From assembly GCF_037042905.1 (NCBI RefSeq), contig NC_087248.1, forward strand, positions 14,446,001 to 14,510,000: 64,000 bases of DNA, in the 5' to 3' direction. Under the pieces are notes generated by a model. It ran no database searches. It was not told the origin of the DNA and saw only the letters and a program-made list of their open reading frames with translations. This DNA is from Lytechinus pictus. Taxonomy: Eukaryota. The position numbers and the translations under genes are program-made. Below, piece after piece: positions 1 to 11,630 of this stretch (position 1 is the first letter of the stretch; each line of letters starts with the position of its first letter).

Positions 1-1781
1 CCATTGCTGTTCTATTGAAAAAGAGCAAATACTGACCTTGAACTTTAGAAGTTGTTGAACTCGGTATTCTAAAACTGGGAAAATGTTTGAAAATATACCC
101 AAAGCAGTTACGCCTTCACAATGTACGTATTCAAGCCATCAATGCGAAATGATGTGTTTGCATTTTTATCTTTTACTTTGGGAATATTGAGACAGTCCTA
201 TCTTATGATATGCCATTCGCGAATTATTATATAATCATTAAAATATCTTTTGGGGGCAGATTTGCCTGTATGTTTGTGGCATAATAATGTGGGCACGATT
301 ATAAAAAAAAGTGCTTCTCTTTTTCCAGATTTATTCTATCGAAATCAGTTTAAGCTTCGCATTTGCGTTTTTGTTTAGTGAGCGACGAATCGTAATAGGT
401 TTAAAAATGGAAATAAATTAAATATGTATACTCAAAAGTTTCAACTCCCATTCTCATTATTTGTGTTTAATGTGATATATTTTTCATGTTAAAATTATAA
501 AAACATTACTGTTAGTTCTTTACTAGTTCAAAGGTCTTTTGATGGGGCAAGGGATGCTGTAACTTTTTATAAGCATATTATCGTCTTCACCAAAAAAATG
601 TTTTTAAAACTGAGTATATGCTAAACTCTTATATATGCCTTGAAAATGCCTTAAAAATGCCTTAGGATTTCGAGGCTTCAAATCCTTGGGGCCATGGCCA
701 AGGCAGACCGAGATATAGACGGAGAGCTGCAGTCTCTTTTCAGTCAGGTTTTCTTTTTTTTTCCACCTGACTAATCCCCCGCGCGCTTACAGCTTGCATA
801 CAGACCAGTCTTTCCACTAAGGAAATTACCCAAATTCCGGTTCAGTAATCCGGATCATCATTCAGGTAAGTTTCGGGTAAGTAAAAAATTCTAGGTAATT
901 CCGTGTAATCCGAAAATTACAATTACACAACAATTAAATGGCGAAACTTTTAATATTTATGTTATCAAAGAATTGTTTACCTCGATACGAAGCCCAAAAT
1001 TTTCCGCTCGCGCTCCGCGCTCGCATTTCGTCGATTTTGTTGAACAATTAATGTTATATCCTTTGATTTTGGTCACTTGGACTGAATATAGGCTGGCTGT
1101 ATTATTGCCCGATTTTTGTTAAAAATCAAACTTGAAACTACCAAAAAATATTTCTGAATTTTTGGGGAATTTGGGATTCAGTTGTGGGGAAAATGTTTTA
1201 GATCTGAGGAGACACTGATGCAGACCATACAGGTGGATTATCCACGTCACCTCAATGACCATTTCAATGCTTTTTAGCCTTTATTCAGATAATATCACAT
1301 TTTTCATACATATTTCATTTCATTTTCATAAATTAAATTTACAAAATGAAGTGAAGTACATGTATACAGCAATAGAACAAATGAAATATTATACATTGTG
1401 ATATACATTTTTAACAAAGATTATCATAACCCATAATACTTACAAAAAAAAGTTCATTTCTCTTGTATTTACTGTATAATAATGCGGTATTGTATGATGA
1501 AAAAATCCAAACAGAAAGACTTTTCAAGTTCTGAGCAGATAATAAAATTGATACCGTATATAAAATAATTTGTTTATAGAGATGTGAATTATATAGGCTA
1601 TCCCATAATAAAATATATATATTTATACCTCTATATTTTGCAAGACAATACAAAAAAATAAGTGCCTACGTTGATACTTGGAAAGTGTACAACAATCTGA
1701 ATAAAGATTTTATACATTAAACATACACAAAAACAGAACAAACATATGATGCAGACCTATGTTGCAGCAAGGCCCTATATA

Positions 1782-2635
1782 TGAAGAGCTCACTTGCATA
1801 AGGGGTTAGGTCAATTTTTCATCAAATTTGATTTTTTTTCCTTTTCTTTTCTTTTTTTTTTTTTTTTGTCTCAATGTATATATAGATTTTTAGTAGCTCT
1901 ATAAGATCATACCAAAGGAAAGTTGAAATTCCCATTAAGAACTGAAATAAAATGGCCAATAAAAATCACCTTTTTTCAAAAGGGGTTAGGTCCATTTTAG
2001 TTTGGTTGCAAAAGGGGTTAGGTCCACAGAGATTTTTTTTGGAAAAAAAAATATTTTTAAAAATGTGAAGACAGGTAGATTTCTTTCATACCCAATTTTA
2101 TGTTCTCATGGTAGGGTATCATGAAATTAAGTTTCGCCGAACAATATTGCAATATGGGAGAATTAAAAAATGATTTTTTAGTTGGAGTGGACCTAACCCC
2201 TTTTGCAACCAAACTTTTCTGAAGAGCTCATTTTTCAAAAGGGGTTAGGTCCATTTTTTTTTTAATATAAATTTTATTATTTTCTGTCTCAAAACCTCTA
2301 AATTTTAAGTCGATCTGATGATACTAAAGAAAATTTGAAATTTAAATAAAAAACGTGAATAAAAAGTGTCAATGCAAAATCACTTTTAATCAAAAGAGAT
2401 TGGATTCATTTCAGTTTGCTTGCAAAAGGGGTTAGGTCCACAATTTTTTTTTTTTTTTAATATATAGAAAAAAAATTGGGGACAGGTAGATTTCTTTTAT
2501 ACCAAATTTTATATTCATATGAAAGGGTAGTACATTATGATAATTTAGTTTCTCATAAGAATATTAAAATAAGTGAGAATAAAAAACTTGTTTTTCTCGG
2601 AATGATCCAAACCTCTTTTGCAACCAAACTCTTCA
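1782..2635. mobile_element. Non-autonomous DNA element with TA TSD, made of two ~430-bp internal units
   Basis: TA|TGAAGAG...TTGCA ... TGCAA...CTCTTCA|TA termini. The motif AAAGGGGTTAGGTCCA recurs in both orientations, and 1782-2220 resembles 2221-2635. Confidence 0.7.
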
Positions 2636-2693
2636 TATCGTATCTCTGTGTGTGTTGCAGTTACACACGCCCTCTATCGTCATTTTTACAATA

Positions 2694-5600
2694 ATGGCTG
2701 AATCTTCAAGCGCTGCTGCTTCCAATTCAGAGGTTTGTTTTTCGTTTTGTCACAATGATAGTGCACTATTTACTATAATCTTTTGCGCATTTATTTATGT
2801 AAGATGTATTTCTATATTTCAGGGTAAAAGTATTTCGTATTGTTACTTTGGGAGGTCGGTAACGGTAATGAAGTTAACAAGTTATATTTTATTGTATGTC
2901 CCGTATGCTGCAAAATTTGTTGGGTTTTGTACTTTTGTTGCCAACAATGTTGGATTTTGTACTAGTCACTAGTAGTAGTACTCACTGTACGATCCATGAT
3001 ATTTCTATATATATTTCAGGATCAAAGTATTTCATATTGTTACTTTGGGAGGTTGGTAACGGTAATGAAGTTAACAATTATACTTTATCGTATGTCCCGT
3101 AGGCTGCAAGGTTTGTTCATTTTGTTGGATTTTGTACGATCCATGCAAATCATGATATTTATAGGCCGATGCAAGTTTTTTTTTATCCAAGTCACTCATT
3201 CAATGAACAAGGTTATGATATAACCTTGTTCTCAGTTATATCTCCATGTGTGGCAAAATAAGGGTGGCAATGTTTGGCTTATTTTCTCTTTTTCTTTGGG
3301 ACAAATGCTTGATTTTTTTACACTGACAGTTTCCATTAGGGCCTACACCTATTCGTCATACAACTTGGTTCTCTTATTAAATTTGATTCTTTAAATTATT
3401 TTTTTCTTAATTAAAAATAGAGATTAAAAAAATAAAATTTTCTTGCCATATTACTTTCTACCAATAGAGGGCGTACACAAAAATATGCCCGAAATTCAAG
3501 TTTTTGAGCGCTCTAGTGAATACAAAAATTATTCCCCAGTTACTAATGAAAAATAAATTGCAACTGTATGGAAATTAGTAATTTTGGTCTCAAAAGTGAT
3601 ATTTTAATGATTTTTTAAAGTACGCGCGACCCACTAGTTAGGAATCCACTGCCAAACGCGGTTCATGGTGCGAGGTTAGTATAACTTCGCAATACATTTG
3701 AGTGAGACTTTCATTGTGTTGACCAAGTGTAAAATGATCAACGATCGTTTTTGATTAAAATGTTGCAACATCCTGAAAGTCTCCTGATGACATTTTTGAT
3801 AATCCTTTTTAGACTCGGGATAATTGCAGACCACTGACTCGACTGAAATAAATACAAATGTCTCAAATTGAGCTCTAAATTTATATGAATGATGATGTAA
3901 ATTATTGTTAAATTATTACGATTTAATAAAATTTTAAGGCCATACTAAAAATATTGGTAATGTCAGCAAAGTTATGTTAAGTTGGAATATGGAAGTACTC
4001 CGGACGTCTCCGAGATAAAGAAGTACATCGCGCATGCGCGATTGATAACATAATTTTTCATTCATGAATAACTTACTCTGCTATGTCATGTAAAATTGTA
4101 TTCTATAATGATATTACGATCGTGAGAAGAGTTTCTGCAACGACGATGTTTGAAAATCAATCCTGACATGATATAATTTTATTTAGACAAGTGCACCCAT
4201 CACTCGTTACGGAATTCGTGATGTCCGTCATTAAAAATGGAAACGTAATACAAATTGAATTGAATTACATCAAACTCTAAATTCATATTAATGATTATCA
4301 TTCGCAAATTATTGTTAAAATATTAAGATTGAATAATGTTCTATGGTCATGATAAGAAATATTGTTAATGAACGCAAGATTTATTTTACGTTGATCCCGG
4401 CGTTGATTTTCCTTTCAGAACAATTTAGATCTGGTTTGATTAAAGCACAATGCGCATGTGCGATCGATGACTATAAATTCCATTCATGAATTCATCGCAC
4501 AAATTATCTCGGCACGAAAAGACGAGTGAGACTCGAATTAGGATCAAAATAAACTTCAAATTAATGGTGAATAGGCATCATAATTATACATGGTTTCATT
4601 TTAGGGAAATAGAAATCGAGTAATAGCTATTAAGGCGCGGCAAAAAGCACATAGCTTGTTTTATCAATCATAACGTCACTGCATCGTATGTAAACTTCGT
4701 GAACGCCCACGCCCCAGGTGGGCCCAAGACAGATTTCATTCATAAAAAACTGTGAGTGAAATTCTAGCGCAAATACAGAACCTCAAGGGTGGGTATGAAA
4801 GTGGAATTTTAGTTATTAATACTTGTGCAGCGTCTGAGAACTTGGAATCAATGTGAGGCTGTCAGCATGGTAATAGAATTGTGTTCAATTAAGTAATTGT
4901 TCACTTGTTTACAACTCCCACGCAAGTTTTATACAGATGTACACGGTGATGGAATTCAGTACACATGCACTGACTTGACCGGGCGTGTACATGTGTACCC
5001 AAAACGGGCCTAATATAGAAGGCAGCACACGGCCTTTTGTTGCTGCCCTCTACGTTCGAAGATGTACAGCACGAAATCAAAATGGCAGATAGGCAAAAGA
5101 TGTTGACTGCTCAGAATGATGTCCAAAAAGCCCCAAATTTATCGATAAAACTTCATCCAACCCTAAAATAATGCAAAAGGTGAGGATGTATTTATGCTAA
5201 ATATGTTTGTGTAAAGATGTTATGTAACCATTTACATCCGATGAACACGGATTTTAAAGCATTCTTGGTACAGTGGCTGTACCTTGGAGAAAGCTATGGC
5301 TGGTCCGAAGTCGTGGTCAATCTTGACCACCGCAATTGCCATCGGCCAGTTTTCATAACAAAGGGAATAACCATCAGTCCTGTTAATATGATATGTATGG
5401 ATTAAAATAGCTTGTGCAAAATAGTTGCAGGGTGGAAAAAAACCCTTAAGCGGCCGCACACTGGTGCAGATACTCTACATATGTATACCAACTCGAGTAA
5501 TGCGCCCGTAATTTGATATGACACATGTGCCTCGAATCGATCTCGATTCAACATGTCAAACTTATTTCACATGCAAGCAGTCAATCCCGACAACACACAC

Positions 5601-8308
5601 TAAAGCTGTACCCTTCTGGACAATAGGCTAAGTCAGTGATAACATCTAATTAATGCCATCAACACATGCGGGAAAGGCGCAAAAATTGACCTTCGTTTTT
5701 GCTGGACAGTGTAGTTCACCAGTAGAGGCGCTGGTCAGAAGATTGGGATCGTCCAAGTTCACAGGGACTGTCTCAGTTTTCAAAGATTTCTCCAAACATG
5801 AAATCTACGATAGTTCATTCACCAGTCAAGTGCCGATACCAATCTTAGACATATCAGGTTTCATAACAAGATTAAATTGGAAGATGGCAAGTCATGAAAA
5901 ATAGACGCTGAACTGGGGGAATCGAGGTCACTAAATCTGTTTTTAGCACACTATATCCCTGTAATTGCTGTCTATATCCCGCAGGGGTAAGTGAAAAGAA
6001 AAAAGCTGTCCCCATAAAGAAGGACAGTCTCTATTTTTCAAGATATTTGTCTTGGTTTATTAGGATGTCCTTGGTTTCTGGGACAATCCCAATTTTTGGA
6101 CCAGCGCCTCTACTGTTCACCGATGAACTGAAATTACAGAGCTAGATCTACATGTACCAGTATGGGATCTTTCCCTCCACATGCATCACACTGTCATTTA
6201 TAGAAAACGTTTTTTGTTTGCATTTTGATTATTCTCTCCTGAAACAGGAAACTGAGGATACCCAGGACTTCGATGGGCAGGAAGTTGATCAAGAAATTCC
6301 TGCTGAGAGTGCCGATAAGAAAAAAAGGTTCTTCAACAAAGAATGTAAGACTTTTTTCAGGCTTTCCATCCTGTTTTAGTTCGCAAGATAACTGAAGAAC
6401 CCAATTTAGCAGATAAACTTAAAGCTTAGGTCATGTATCCACCTTTTTTTTCTAATTTACATGTACATCCTCTAGGGCACATGGCTAACTTGCCCCACCT
6501 GGATATGCTGGATATTCCATACTTTTAAAACATTATATATAGAAATAGTCTGCTTCAGCATATGGAATATATATATATATATATTTGTCTATTTATGTAT
6601 ATATATCAAATTGGAGAGAACTGAATTTTTCAAGATTGAGATAGTATTTGCCAGTCTCTAGGAGGTATCAAAGTATAAATCATATATCCATATATATTTT
6701 TTTATCATATTACAAAAAAGCAATGTTTACATCTCGTTCTTTTTTCTTCTTTAATCTTACTGTGCAGTGAGATGTATGATGTATGGCTTTGGTGATGATC
6801 AGAACCCATATGCTGAAACTGTGGATCTACTAGAAGATTTAGTTCTTGGCTTTATTACAGATATAGTAAGTGTGCTATGCATGTTGCTTTTGAAAATAAA
6901 TAGAAAAGAAAGAAGTGTGGACAGGGGTGTGAGAGTTCAGATTTTTATCTGATTTCCGATTTTTTTTTTTTTTGGTTTTTATTTTCAGCTTAATTTCAGC
7001 TTATTTTTGGCTTTCCTCTGTGCAAAAAGTATGGGAGCTCTTTCTTTTTCAGACTTTTTCAACACTCTTCAGCTTTTTTCAGATCTTTTTATTTGTGACC
7101 ACTCACACCCCTGAGTGTGGATAAAGTGCATATTCCACAAATGTTGAAGGTAGATTTTTACAAGTATATAGGCCTACTAAACGTGATAATGATGGTATTA
7201 ATAGTCATCGTATTTAAAGGTCAAGTCCACCCCAGAAAAATGTTGATTTGAATACATGTAAGTAGAGAAAAATCAAACAAGCATAACGCTAAAAATTTCA
7301 TCAAAATCGGATGTAAAAAAAGAAAGTTGTGCATAATTTCACAAAACAGTTATATGCACATCCTGGTCGGTATGCAAATGAGGAGACTGATGACATCATC
7401 CACTCACTATTTCTTTTGTATTTTATGATACAAAATATGAAATATTCTAATTTTCTCATTGTCAAGGGAAACAACGACCAATTCCTCCCTGAACTTGTGG
7501 AATGAGCATTGTTCAATACTATATGGTTCAGTCAAGTTGGTCCTTATTGTCAAAAACATAAATAATGAAATATTGTATAATTCAAACAATAAAAAACAAA
7601 AGAAATAGATGGACATCATCGACTGGCCCATTTGCATGTCACTGAGTTGTGCATATCACTGTTTTGTGAAAAATAAGCGAAACTTCAAAATGTAACTTTT
7701 TATTATACATGTACATCTGATTTTGATGAAGTTTTCAGCATTATGTTTGGATTTTTCTCTATTTATTCAAATCAACATTTTTCTGGGGTGGACTTGACCT
7801 TTAAATTAGAATGTCTGTAATTTAGATGCAACGGTCTTTGCTTTAATAAGCCAAGAGAGTAATAACTACATGTACTTGAATAAATTTTCAAATTATATTT
7901 ATAAAGATATGCATTACCCAGGAAAGCTTGCCAACTTTTTTCTTTAGTCTGTAAGAACTATACAGATTTATTTTAGTAACTAGACTATGCTTGTCTTTTC
8001 AGAGGTACAATACATGTTTTGCATTATCCGCCCTTAAAATTACTTTAAATTGTTATTGACTTTTGGAAAGTACTGCATGCAGTAGAGTAAATAATAATTC
8101 CATGCAGCATCTCATTCTCTTCCTTCATGTTCTTTTCAATCAGACCCTGAAGTCAACCCAGGTAGGCCGACAAGGCAGAGTTCAAGTAGAGGATATCATC
8201 TTTCTCATCAGGAAAGACCCTCGCAAGTATTCCAGAATCAAACAGCTTCTACTGATGAATGAAGAACTCAAGAAAGCTAGGAAGGCATTTGACGAAGCCA
8301 ATTATTAG
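2694..8308 (+). CDS. TAF13: Transcription initiation factor TFIID subunit 13 (132 aa, 4 exons)
   Basis: Exons 2694-2732, 6248-6344, 6768-6865, 8144-8308; all GT-AG, phases 0/1/0, total 399 nt. Protein MAESSS...KKRFFNKELRCMMYGFGDDQNPYAETVDLLEDLV...GRVQVEDIIFLIRKDPRKYSRIKQLLLMNEELKKARKAFDEANY matches the TAF13 histone-fold signature. The short exon 1 is the least certain. Confidence 0.93.
2807..3145. repeat. ~195-bp tandem duplication in TAF13 intron 1
   Basis: The block tattgttactttgggagg(t/c)ggtaacggtaatgaagttaacaa...gtatgtcccgta occurs twice (~2838 and ~3035). Confidence 0.85.
5720..6115. mobile_element. MITE with CAGTAGAGGCGCTGGTC TIRs and 5-bp TSD (TTCAC)
   Basis: Imperfect ~36-bp TIRs; TTCAC at 5715-5719 and 6116-6120. 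Confidence 0.85.
7218..7800. mobile_element. ~590-bp TTAA-TSD MITE (Kolobok-like AGG termini), copy 1
   Basis: TTAA|AGGTCAAGTCCACCCC...GGGGTGGACTTGACCT|TTAA with ~120-bp TIRs; homologous copies at 26793, 38105 and 53275. Confidence 0.9.
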
Positions 8309-8607
8309 TGAAAATGTCCTGTTGAACTGTCAATCATAGAAGATGATATGGGTACTAGGACGGAAGTTCCGCTACTTTAGGAAACTGAGCAAAGGACCCA
8401 TATCTTAGATAATTTTTCTGGTGATTCGACAGCTGTGAATTGTAAGAACTGAAATACAGCGAGATAGTATTACATGTAGGAGTTTGTTTTATTGGTGTGG
8501 AAACTATATAAAGGTTACGATACAGTGGCTTGCAGTACATATTTATCGCTGCATTTCTTGATGACATCCTTAGATTCGGAACCTTCGAAGGATCAGCCTT
8601 GCCGAGG

Positions 8608-8970
8608 ATGGTGAAAAGATGCAAAGGTGACGCGGGTCACCAGCGAATGAACTACCTGTACCAAGCAGCCCACTGCACCCTGGCACAGAACCCTGGGAAC
8701 ACTCAGCTGGCCAGGTTCTACATCGAGACCATGAAGAATGTAGCAGCAAAGCTCGTGCTAAGACTTGATCCTCATATCAAGCGTACTATATGCAAAAAGT
8801 GCAGTTCCCTTTTGATCCCTGGGGTCACTGCTACTGTCAGGGTCAAAGGTCGTAGGCAGAAGCACGTGGTAGTGACATGCTTAGATTGTAAACAAGTCAA
8901 GAGGTTCAATACGGATGAAAAGCATGTTCTGTGGGCACATAAAACGGAAGCCATTCAAGACAAGAGCTGA
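8608..8970 (+). CDS. RPP21: Ribonuclease P protein subunit p21 (Rpr2/Rpp21 family), intronless, 120 aa
   Basis: First ATG of the ORF is at 8608 in strong context (aggATGg). Motifs QRMNYLYQAAH, LARFY, KRTICKKC...LLIPG and VVTCLDC give the two CxxC zinc-ribbon pairs typical of Rpp21. Confidence 0.93.
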   Translation: MVKRCKGDAGHQRMNYLYQAAHCTLAQNPGNTQLARFYIETMKNVAAKLVLRLDPHIKRTICKKCSSLLIPGVTATVRVKGRRQKHVVVTCLDCKQVKRFNTDEKHVLWAHKTEAIQDKS

Positions 8971-9291
8971 TAAATCGGCTTTTAAGTGTAGATTGCCAAA
9001 AGAAACTCGTGCTAAGAGGATGCGCGCTACTGCGTACTAATCAATAAGATTGTGCACAACATATCATGTGCACGGCGGCATTTCTGCACGACTCTAATTC
9101 ACACTTATTTGAAGTTATTTCTTTGTGACCAACATCCCCCCCCCCCCCCTCCCGGTTATGTAAAGAAAGTCGAAAGTCATAGGTAAAAAGCTGTGACTTG
9201 GAATATTACTTTGTGTAAGCATGAATTATTTTCATCTGATTTCTTTATAGAATGTAAGTTTTGGTCCCAGTTCATAATTTAATTCATTTAA

Positions 9292-9837
9292 AGGGGTACT
9301 CAAGGTTTAACATCATATGATTTGAACAGATAAAGAAAAATCAGACAAAACACTGATCATTCGATCAGAATCAGACAATGAATAACAAAGTTATGGCATT
9401 TTAAAGATTTGCATTATTCTAATGAAACAGTTCTAGGAATGTCTTTATAAATATTCAATGAGCAAACTGATGATGAAATATCTCTCTTGTTCTTTTGTAT
9501 TTTATTGTTTGAAATTAGGTTTATTCTTTTTTTTCCTCTAAGAATTAAAAAACAGTTAAACTGACAACTGATTCAGTGCATTAGATATTCATTGCTGCAA
9601 TTTATTTCATTATAAGGGAGACATATCATTCACACATGAATCAAAATATTGAAACAATTGTGATTTCATGTAATAACATAAGAAAAGGGAAAATGGAGAT
9701 GTCATCAGCCCACCTAATTAATATTCATGACGATCTGTTTTCACAAAATATTGAAAAATTTAAAATTCAATAACTTCATTATTTGATATAACAAAGTTAC
9801 GATGAAATCTGATAAATCTTCAGCCCAGAGCACCCCT
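9292..9837. mobile_element. Diverged TTAA-TSD MITE related to the 7218 family
   Basis: TTAA|AGGGGTACTC...GAGCACCCCT|TTAA; similar internal organisation. Confidence 0.7.
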
Positions 9838-10115
9838 TTAAACTGAGGTTACAAGAGTATCTTGCTATCCTATCCTTGTAGAATTGGGTTCTTAGGATGG
9901 TTTATAGAGCTAAAATCAGTTACACATGACATTACACATGTTGGGAACATGGTAATAAACAAGACTCGGTTATTTTGTTTGAAATTATTGACCAGCATCC
10001 AGATGCTAAGTTCACTTTTAAACATTTCATTAATATTATCATGAATTGATTCCCTTTTTGAAAAATTCAGCCTCAAGGGAGCCATACATGTACCATAAAA
10101 CTGTTAGTTACAAAT

Positions 10116-10221
10116 GGGCATTTTCATGGTAACTGACGTTACACGGCACAATTTTACACCTTTCATTGTGAAAAGGTGTGTAAAATTGTGCCGTGTAACG
10201 TCAGTTACCGTGAAAATGCCC
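10116..10221. repeat. Near-perfect fold-back (~50-bp stem) mini-element
   Basis: gggcattttca(t)ggtaactgacgttacacggcacaattttacacctttca followed by its reverse complement; flanked by a direct repeat AAAT (or CAAATG, depending on boundary). Confidence 0.9.
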
Positions 10222-10539
10222 AAATGCTTTTACGAGTGACTGGTAATCCTTGTGCTCAATGAGTTTTTTCTGTTTTAACCTAATTGGTATAGATCTAACT
10301 TTCTATGACCCATCAATCTGATTTCGCACAAGAGAAGGATAGCAGTCATGCATAACTTATGAGAGCTTTATGAGACACACTGAAGTAATGTTCGGAGTAT
10401 TCATGGTGAGATTTTGATATCCTTGATATTGATTTACACAGAATCACTGCTGGTGGGAGTTTCATAAACCTGTTTGCAGGCTATGACTGACTTTAAGAAC
10501 GATTGGTGATCCTTCCTTGTGGCAAGCGGTCAACACCAG

Positions 10540-10968
10540 GGCCCCCGTATTACAAAGAGTTACGATTGATCCAATCAATCGTAACTCTATGGAAATCCAT
10601 CAGTGTCATAATTTTTCTACAGGACTTTTGCACAATGTCCTTTGAAAAAAAAGAGAAGCATACTGAATTGTCAAGAAAACAGTAAATGTATAAATATACC
10701 AATAACTAGAAAATATTTTGAAGAAACATGTATTTTAGATGTTGGCGTTGCTGGCTTTCCATAGTTGTGATTGATTGGATCAATCGTAACTCTTTGTAAG
10801 ATGGGGCCCAGGGCTCCGTAACACAATGGTTTGTAATCAATCGCTGAATACCAATGACCAATCAAGATCATCGTTGCATGCATACTCTGTTTAACATACT
10901 GACCGGGAGCCAATGAGTGCGGTTCTTTCATATTTGCAGTTCATGGCAAACCTTTGTGTTACGGAGCC
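10540..10968. mobile_element. Two back-to-back PIF/Harbinger-like MITEs (10540-10808 and 10812-10968) with CWG TSDs
   Basis: CAG|GGCCCC.GT.TTACAAAGAGTTACG...GGGGCC|CAG|GGCTCCGTAACACAA...TTGTGTTACGGAGCC|CTG. Related copies at ~11108-11360 (truncated), ~42106-42365 (inverted) and ~35730-35895. Confidence 0.8.
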
Positions 10969-11472
10969 CTGATCTCCATTGGCGCTGGGTTAGTTCCTAA
11001 TTTAGGGTCTTTTGTTTTAAATCACTCAAAACTTACGAACAGCTTTATTAAACACCCACCCGCTGTGGTAACAATCATTAATTACAATTTGTATTAAAAT
11101 GGTCCTGGGCCCCGTCTTACAAAGAGTTACGTTTGATCCAATCAGTCGTGATTCTATGGAAATCCATCAGTGTCATAATTTTTTCTACAGGAAATTTGCA
11201 TCATGAGCTTTGAAAACAAAGAGAAGCACAGTGAATTTTAAAGAAAACAATGAATGCAAGATTATACATCATAGTTAGAAAATATTTTGAACGAACGTGC
11301 GTAATAGATGTTGACGTTGCTGGCCGTCCATAGTTGTGATTGATCGGATCAATTGCAATTCAGGCACCATTGCATCCAATGATTTATCCATGATTGAAGG
11401 CCATCAAAGCCATGGCTGTTGATGAAATTTCCACTGTGCTCAGTTCCCCTCCAATTGACCTTTGGAGTTCTG

Positions 11473-11630
11473 GGGCCCATTTCATATTAAGAGTTACATC
11501 TGTTGTAACTTTGCCATTATGGCAACTACCATGGTAACCTTGATTATGATTGGCTGCTGAGTACTGTTACCATGGTAGTTGCCATAATGGCAAAGTTACA
11601 ATAGTAATAAGATCTTTATGAAACGGGCCT
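11473..11630. mobile_element. Short palindromic Harbinger-like MITE (CTG TSD)
   Basis: CTG|GGGCCCATTTCAT...ATGAAACGGGCCT|CTG with internal inverted TTTGCCATTATGGCAACTACCATGGTAAC; truncated relative at ~30243-30381. Confidence 0.75.

Follow-up and report, generated by a model that had tools for sequence, protein, structure and literature searches.

We describe a gene pair on the + strand of a 64,000-nucleotide stretch of the Lytechinus pictus genome (contig NC_087248.1, positions 14,446,001 to 14,510,000; this whole stretch is termed the window, and positions are given in its coordinates unless another contig is named), in which an intronless gene for the RNase P subunit RPP21 follows the gene for the TFIID subunit TAF13. 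The TAF13 transcription unit appears not to be terminated before RPP21; mature spliced RNA runs through both open reading frames (ORFs). We propose, with a probability of about 0.7, that RPP21 is an orphaned retrogene inside the 3' part of the TAF13 unit and that it is expressed on a dicistronic TAF13-RPP21 mRNA. This proposal is carried by the gene structure, the single copy of RPP21, the continuous coverage in mature RNA, the linkage of the two genes in echinoids and the ancestral state seen in outgroups, from which we infer a single molecule that starts at the TAF13 cap and ends in a poly(A) tail downstream of RPP21. In the sampled tissues, the dicistronic RNA would be the main, and possibly the only, RNA containing RPP21.

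Structure of the TAF13-RPP21 locus

RNA evidence for the locus came from two stranded, ribosomal RNA-depleted runs of one study (X19 and X20, 151-nt reads), which were mapped to positions 6200-10699, and from contigs of two further studies (X1 and X15), which were aligned to the same positions. Depths and counts separated by a slash are for X19 and X20, in that order. TAF13 has four exons on the + strand, and the features of the locus are as follows.

5171..5179, + strand: predicted end of TAF13 exon 1 with the putative start codon (ATG CAA AAG, then gtgagg), based on a strong donor in a phase (0) that matches exon 2
6248..6344, + strand: TAF13 exon 2; joint 6344>6768 (GT..AG) in 12 and 5 reads and in the X1 and X15 contigs, with the TAF13 frame continuing
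6768..6865, + strand: TAF13 exon 3; Pfam TFIID-18kDa match, 8.3e-12; joint 6865>8144 (GT..AG) in 36 and 52 reads and in two contigs
8144..8308, + strand: coding part of the last TAF13 exon (exon 4), preceded by ...tcag, with the stop codon TAG at 8306-8308; Pfam TFIID-18kDa match, 2e-15; depth 57/73
8309..8607, + strand: intercistronic spacer of 299 nt, transcribed and kept in mature RNA
8608..8970, + strand: RPP21, an intronless ORF of 120 amino acids with ATG at 8608 and TGA at 8968-8970; Pfam Rpr2 (PF04032) match, 3.7e-27
8971..9975, + strand: 3' untranslated region (UTR), placed from depth bins, point depths and hexamers

The RPP21 ORF matches the Rpr2 model over its entire length (positions 1-90 of 90; 94.8 bits against a gathering cut-off of 29.3), and the zinc-ribbon cysteines C62, C65, C91 and C94 (CxxC ... 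CxxC) are invariant in an alignment of 10 metazoan RPP21 proteins. These coordinates and the Rpr2 match confirm the original prediction, made from the sequence alone, of an intact, intronless RPP21 ORF at 8608-8970 that begins 299 nt after the TAF13 stop codon at 8308. The ratio of nonsynonymous to synonymous divergence (dN/dS) of RPP21 is 0.04-0.16, with saturated dS, showing strong purifying selection. When the entire 812-Mb assembly was searched in all six frames, the ORF in the window was the sole RPP21 match (E = 3e-78), and no parental RPP21 turned up elsewhere. The protein must come from this locus, given that RPP21 is single-copy and strongly constrained by purifying selection, and RPP21 at 8608-8970 is a functional gene of the organism, not a spare or decaying retrocopy.

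On the TAF13 side, exons 3 and 4 together span positions 8-93 of the histone-fold model PF02269 (TFIID 18 kDa), with exon 4 accounting for positions 42-93, and the complete TAF13 ORF upstream of RPP21 has 122 codons. The X15 contig includes 33 nt of an upstream exon beyond exon 2, and its match extends past the exon 2 acceptor by the two bases AG, which fits an exon 1 whose last bases are AG. Upstream of this, a 29-codon ORF at 5083-5173 (ATG at 5083, MADRQKM...) ends in a TAA that shares one base with the putative TAF13 start (TAATG, 5169-5173); if the transcription start site (TSS) is upstream, TAF13 itself would lie behind an upstream ORF (uORF) whose stop overlaps its start. We also observed a second TFIID-18kDa (PF02269) match (6.5e-8) at C4:15983302-15983496, on the same chromosome and about 1.5 Mb downstream of the window, which is possibly an SPT3-type paralogue rather than a second TAF13.

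Mature-RNA coverage is continuous through both reading frames

In both runs, all exon coverage came from reads with the first mate on the - strand, corresponding to RNA from the + strand, and depth was 0 in the unique intron bins at 6350-6649 and 7850-7999. Because these bins are empty, a background of genomic DNA or nascent RNA is excluded; DNA, pre-mRNA or nascent RNA as the origin of the spacer signal was accordingly rejected, the coverage also being strictly one-stranded. Depth across the last TAF13 exon, the spacer and RPP21 was as follows.

8150-8299, TAF13 exon 4: mean depth 56.9 (X19) / 73.1 (X20)
8300-8449, spacer: mean depth 38 (X19) / 54 (X20)
8450-8599, spacer: mean depth 40.7 (X19) / 50.9 (X20)
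8600-9049, RPP21, three bins: mean depth 52-58 (X19) / 45-66 (X20)
Point depth (X19/X20): 47/59 at 8293, 38/55 at 8356, 31/45 at 8454, 35/52 at 8487, 47/53 at 8562 and 53/62 at 8606

In mature RNA, the spacer reaches a level of 60-90% relative to the two ORFs, with an overall point depth of 28-47 (X19) and 41-55 (X20). RPP21 was never deeper than TAF13 exon 4, the ratio of RPP21 to exon-4 depth being 0.98 (X19) and 0.79 (X20), and a ratio of no more than 1 leaves no excess that would point to a separate population of RPP21-only RNA. The number of reads across the joint of exons 3 and 4 (36/52) is in line with the depth of exon 4, indicating that the RNA entering exon 4 is spliced TAF13 RNA. 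Only two joints, 6344>6768 and 6865>8144, were supported by reads, and no site with a pile-up of read starts or ends, including in the spacer, was reported for X19 or X20.

The contigs from the two further studies show the same continuity: in record 1 of X1 (1,197 nt), exons 2-4 are spliced together and the sequence continues uninterrupted to 9134, and record 7 of X15 (1,429 nt) joins the same exons and continues uninterrupted to 9342. Depth on exons 2 and 3 and the read count of the 6344>6768 joint are low, which is largely a mapping artefact, because 151-nt reads must cross two joints in exons of 97 and 98 nt and exon 1 lies outside the mapped stretch. The proposal that one transcription unit contains both ORFs, with which the original prediction had started, is supported by mature stranded coverage, introns at zero depth and spliced contigs that bridge the spacer.

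Origin of the echinoid RPP21 gene

At the outgroup loci, RPP21 is a multi-exon gene in other surroundings, listed here in gene order.

Asterias rubens (two assemblies): UbiA (-), multi-exon RPP21 (+), zf-CCCH (-)
Ptychodera flava: UbiA (-), multi-exon RPP21 (+), zf-CCCH (-)
Saccoglossus kowalevskii: UbiA, multi-exon RPP21
Amphiura filiformis: multi-exon RPP21 of 12 kb, GCD14, the same zf-CCCH gene

Ptychodera, Amphiura and Asterias have introns in common after ...NFLYQ and ...LVLRI, and taken together, these loci indicate that the ancestral ambulacrarian RPP21 contained introns and was located in a UbiA/zf-CCCH neighbourhood. All of the ancestral introns are missing in echinoids, where the RPP21 ORF is uninterrupted in the window, in a contig of another urchin (L002) and in Diadema. 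The loss of all introns at once, the move away from the UbiA/zf-CCCH neighbourhood and the sole genome copy argue for retroposition, supporting the earlier suggestion that RPP21 had retroposed into the TAF13 3' UTR. On these sequence comparisons, echinoid RPP21 is best read as an orphaned retrogene, the parent of which was lost and which was captured by the TAF13 transcription unit. A poly(A) remnant or target-site duplications are not expected to have survived for so long, because the urchin flanks are only about 43% identical. A search for the ancestral locus in the L. pictus genome through Pfam UbiA and zf-CCCH_3 was uninformative, with matches on different contigs (C14/C10/C5 versus C9).

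In Amphiura, another tRNA-processing gene lies tightly behind RPP21: an apparently intronless ORF of 374 amino acids for a GCD14/TRM61-type methyltransferase (L009, 22032-23156) starts a mere 115 nt or so past the RPP21 gene and is encoded on the same strand.

The arrangement is conserved in echinoids

The urchin contig L002 (2,039 nt, from a public run) contains spliced TAF13 exons 2-4, a 345-nt spacer, RPP21 and about 1 kb of 3' UTR. Its RPP21 is 79% identical to that in the window, and between the two, dS is 2-3.5 (saturated) and dN/dS 0.03-0.04 for both genes. In Diadema antillarum, the TAF13 stop codon is followed by a 474-nt spacer and an intronless RPP21 on the same strand. Furthermore, an 82-kb contig of a metagenome assembly encodes an RPP21 most like the echinoid ones (65-72% identity), and some 1.9 kb upstream of it the same strand holds an ORF for the last TAF13 exon; in the short contigs L005-L008 of the same clade, the TAF13 end was not found within 225-464 nt upstream. 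The linkage of TAF13 and RPP21, whose conservation the original prediction had put forward for checking, is therefore kept among echinoids (Diadema and L002) and is absent from the starfish, brittle star and acorn worm loci examined (Asterias, Amphiura, Ptychodera and Saccoglossus).

The spacer and the proposed translation of RPP21

AATAAA and ATTAAA are both absent from the spacer at 8309-8607, and likewise from all three readable echinoid spacers (window, L002 and Diadema). The hexamers that it does contain are AATACA at 8453 and TATAAA at 8507; CGGAAGT at 8361 (ETS-like), ATTGG at 8491 (CCAAT-like), TATATAAA at 8505-8512 and an AG at 8534-8535 in frame with RPP21 are its other motifs. Downstream of RPP21, the poly(A) hexamers are AATAAG at 9043, ATTAAA at 9544 and AATAAA at 9954 and 12206. 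The original prediction had reported the lack of both canonical signals from the spacer, the two downstream AATAAA hexamers and the positions of AATACA, CGGAAGT, ATTGG, TATATAAA and the in-frame AG, all of which we find as placed; ATTAAA at 9544 and AATAAG at 9043 are added here. By a rough estimate, a stretch of about 300 nt is expected to contain no canonical poly(A) signal with P ~0.6, which alone is not improbable, and it is the RNA evidence and the conservation across echinoids that place the TAF13-RPP21 arrangement beyond chance.

The three readable spacers cannot be aligned, and no conserved element (promoter, internal ribosome entry site (IRES) or structure) was found across them; the identity of the window and L002 spacers is 43%, about the level of unrelated sequence. 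TATAAA occurs in two of the three (window and L002) and not in Diadema, from which AATACA is also absent. The fold of the window spacer is nothing unusual (z = -0.52), and a comparison with Rfam returned zero matches. In L002, a tandem duplication of about 90 nt was observed in the spacer (480-700; tttcaaagaaaacaggatta(t/c)aaaggagcgtagatc...ttctcacaat), showing that the intercistronic region tolerates large changes. In the window, the RNA samples differ from the assembly by a heterozygous 1-nt insertion at 8454-8455, where local read mapping is lowered.

Five AUGs are present in the spacer, opening uORFs of 1-21 codons each. The last of these (8561-8614) ends in AUGGUGA and overlaps the RPP21 AUG. 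In the window as well as in L002 and Diadema, the context of the RPP21 AUG is itself strong to optimal, with A at -3 and G at +4.

We propose that a processed, intronless RPP21 copy replaced the ancestral multi-exon gene, and that the TAF13 promoter would now drive a spliced mRNA of about 1.2 kb (about 2.1 kb in a minor, longer form) that includes the TAF13 ORF, the 299-nt spacer and the RPP21 ORF. Polyadenylation would take place only past RPP21 because the spacer would offer no efficient poly(A) signal. Given that RNA for RPP21 alone is not visible, the dicistronic RNA would be the source of RPP21 protein, presumably by an unconventional route, and termination-reinitiation by way of the short spacer uORFs appears more likely than leaky scanning or an IRES. 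Repeated termination-reinitiation is favoured over leaky scanning because there are five uORFs, the last of which overlaps the RPP21 AUG in its optimal context; as regards an IRES, the spacer has no conservation, no unusual stability (z = -0.52) and no Rfam match. A low-level internal promoter may add some RPP21 RNA and may even be the real source of the RPP21 RNA that is translated.

Once the parent RPP21 had disappeared, an essential gene would have become dependent on the transcript of its host gene. The Diadema/camarodont urchin split dates back in the order of 200 My or more. More tentatively, and at somewhat under even odds, the essential single-copy RPP21 would have been made solely as the second cistron of the cap-dependent TAF13 mRNA, by reinitiation or internal entry, since before that split. 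If this is true, the output of a TFIID subunit would be coupled to that of a tRNA-processing subunit.

Alternative readings of the locus

Several observations weigh against the dicistronic reading. Depth in the spacer dips by 25-40% (X19) and 15-30% (X20), which could reflect some TAF13 mRNAs ending at about 8350-8470 and some RPP21 mRNAs starting at about 8500-8590, near the TATATAAA at 8505; equally, the dip could stem from mapping loss at the indel polymorphism at 8454/8455 and at nearby single-nucleotide polymorphisms. The 151-nt reads are shorter than the 299-nt spacer and de Bruijn contigs can merge overlapping transcripts, so that single molecules with both ORFs are not proven by these data. 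Raw reads were from two samples of one study, and other stages or tissues may differ, while gene calls for the Diadema assembly give TAF13 and RPP21 as two separate genes. Finally, with a 122-codon upstream ORF and five spacer AUGs, reinitiation or leaky scanning looks inefficient, and the spacer has no conserved or stable IRES-like feature. Given the dip in depth, a minority of transcripts may start at an internal promoter or end at an early poly(A) site of TAF13.

A stronger version of this, which the original prediction had raised as its competing reading, is that the locus consists of two tightly packed units, with TAF13 ending at AATACA (8453) and a GU-rich tract, RPP21 having its own compact promoter (CGGAAGT, ATTGG and TATATAAA) with a TSS at about 8535, and the bridging signal arising from overlapping ends or low read-through. 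The motifs are indeed present at these places, TATAAA also occurs in the L002 spacer, and short reads cannot phase the TAF13 and RPP21 ORFs; moreover, X19 depth goes down from 47 at 8293 to 28-31 at 8454 and up from 35 at 8487 to 47-53 at 8562-8606. However, depth at 8454-8487 is still 28-35 (X19) and 41-52 (X20), compared to flanks of 47-53 and 59-62, with X20 being almost flat, and neither a pile-up of starts or ends nor an RPP21 depth above that of TAF13 exon 4 was seen. The X1, X15 and second-species contigs all run through the spacer, and TATAAA and AATACA are absent in Diadema, the spacers being otherwise unalignable. We therefore consider two separate units unlikely: separate ends and a separate promoter may account for a minority of transcripts at most, and as the main source of RPP21 RNA they are at odds with a depth at 8454-8487 of 60-88% of the flanks, with the lack of pile-ups and with the missing TATA in Diadema. 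Another improbable reading accepts the dicistronic RNA, but only as a TAF13 mRNA with a long 3' UTR, with RPP21 protein being made from a rare monocistronic RNA or from a stage- or tissue-specific internal promoter. In its favour, eukaryotic ribosomes seldom reach a second long ORF, and RNase P proteins are required in small amounts; also, the Kozak context of the RPP21 AUG is strong, a TSS at about 8535 would give a short leader with one weak upstream AUG, and in X19 as much as roughly a third of the coverage of RPP21 could begin within the spacer. Yet no separate RPP21 RNA is visible, with a depth ratio of no more than 1, and the spacers show no conserved promoter motif. In addition, tight linkage on the same strand has been kept across saturated synonymous divergence, which is easier to understand if RPP21 expression depends on the TAF13 unit.

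Splicing of TAF13 exons into acceptors at 8535/8573, which the original prediction had allowed for, would produce either a protein in which the TAF13 N-terminus is fused to RPP21 or an mRNA that encodes RPP21 behind a TAF13 leader. Although the AG at 8534-8535 is in the RPP21 frame and both exon 1 and exon 3 finish in phase 0, the joints listed, which include contig-only ones, contain none that leads from 6344 or 6865 into 8536/8574, and X20 has no depth step at 8536, making this highly improbable. Fusion or alternative splicing from exons 2 or 3 into 8536/8574 was largely refuted, as the canonical joints carry all of the read support. To our knowledge, spliced leader trans-splicing is not known in echinoderms; at 8535/8573, there was no joint and no loose end among those listed to suggest it, and no X20 depth step.

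Relation to known dicistronic genes and retrogenes

As a proposed dicistronic mRNA, TAF13-RPP21 most closely resembles human RPP14/HsHTD2, in which an RNase P subunit and an unrelated full-length conserved protein are likewise encoded on one mature mRNA, with the second ORF in the would-be 3' UTR. The translation mechanism of the human bicistronic mRNA is not established, with leaky scanning or reinitiation being presumed (PMC4705651). In the human case the RNase P subunit (RPP14) is the first cistron, whereas the urchin has a different subunit, RPP21, in second place, with a TFIID subunit as partner; unlike RPP14/HsHTD2, the urchin arrangement has an origin that is traceable to retroposition within echinoderms.

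Drosophila dicistronic genes are further animal cases without trans-splicing. Among mammalian dicistronic mRNAs, GDF1/CERS1 and SNURF/SNRPN are also expressed without it (PMC4705651). The Drosophila and mammalian cases share with the arrangement proposed for the urchin two non-overlapping conserved ORFs on one capped, polyadenylated Pol II transcript and a short spacer without a poly(A) signal, and they involve neither TAF13 nor RPP21. In the human TRIM39-RPP21 read-through, RPP21 is co-transcribed with its upstream neighbour, as in the urchin, but in the human transcript splicing creates a fusion ORF and RPP21 has retained a promoter and introns of its own, whereas no splice links the urchin ORFs.

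Orphan retrogenes arise by relocation through retroposition, followed by loss of the parent. Echinoid RPP21 resembles them in being an intronless copy at a new locus and under purifying selection, with the ancestral intron-containing gene gone. Most retrogenes gain their own promoter or use an intron or 5' exon of the host; echinoid RPP21 differs in that it appears to depend on read-through from the last exon of its host, as a downstream cistron.

The literature that was searched contained no paper with both TAF13 and RPP21 and nothing relevant on dicistronic genes in echinoderms, and an animal dicistronic TAF13-RPP21 mRNA appears to be unreported so far. Dicistronic mRNAs encoding two full-length, conserved and unrelated proteins are rare in deuterostomes and their origin is mostly obscure, whereas that of TAF13-RPP21 is readable: RPP21 shed its introns, moved out of surroundings that hemichordates and starfish still have in common, and settled behind TAF13. 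Translation of a downstream cistron is testable here in a tractable embryo, with natural spacers of 299, 345, 474 and about 1,900 nt. Echinoid gene models are probably wrong where they let TAF13 finish at the stop codon and assign a separate promoter to RPP21.

3' ends of the transcript and repeats in the region

Behind the RPP21 ORF, depth drops from 58/67 at 9029 to 14/20 at 9117, continues at about 10-20 to 9350 and about 8 to 9950, falls to 2-4 past the AATAAA at 9954 and reaches about 0.4-1 at 10250-10399. The major 3' end is likely at about 9050-9110, some 80-140 nt past the RPP21 stop codon and downstream of AATAAG at 9043, this AAUAAG perhaps being the signal used; the profile also suggests a minor longer form ending near 9975, after the AATAAA at 9954. 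At 9135-9150, the RNA samples differ from the assembly in a length-variable poly-C tract and several fixed differences, which lower mapping and make 3'-end positions approximate.

Foldback repeats resembling miniature inverted-repeat transposable elements occur at 7220-7800, in TAF13 intron 3, and at 9270-9830, in the long form of the 3' UTR, with others at 10100-10230, 10530-10830, 11100-11370 and 11488-11617. These repeats show very high multi-copy depth of reads and contigs on both strands, and their sub-threshold Rfam matches to microRNA precursors merely reflect perfect hairpins.

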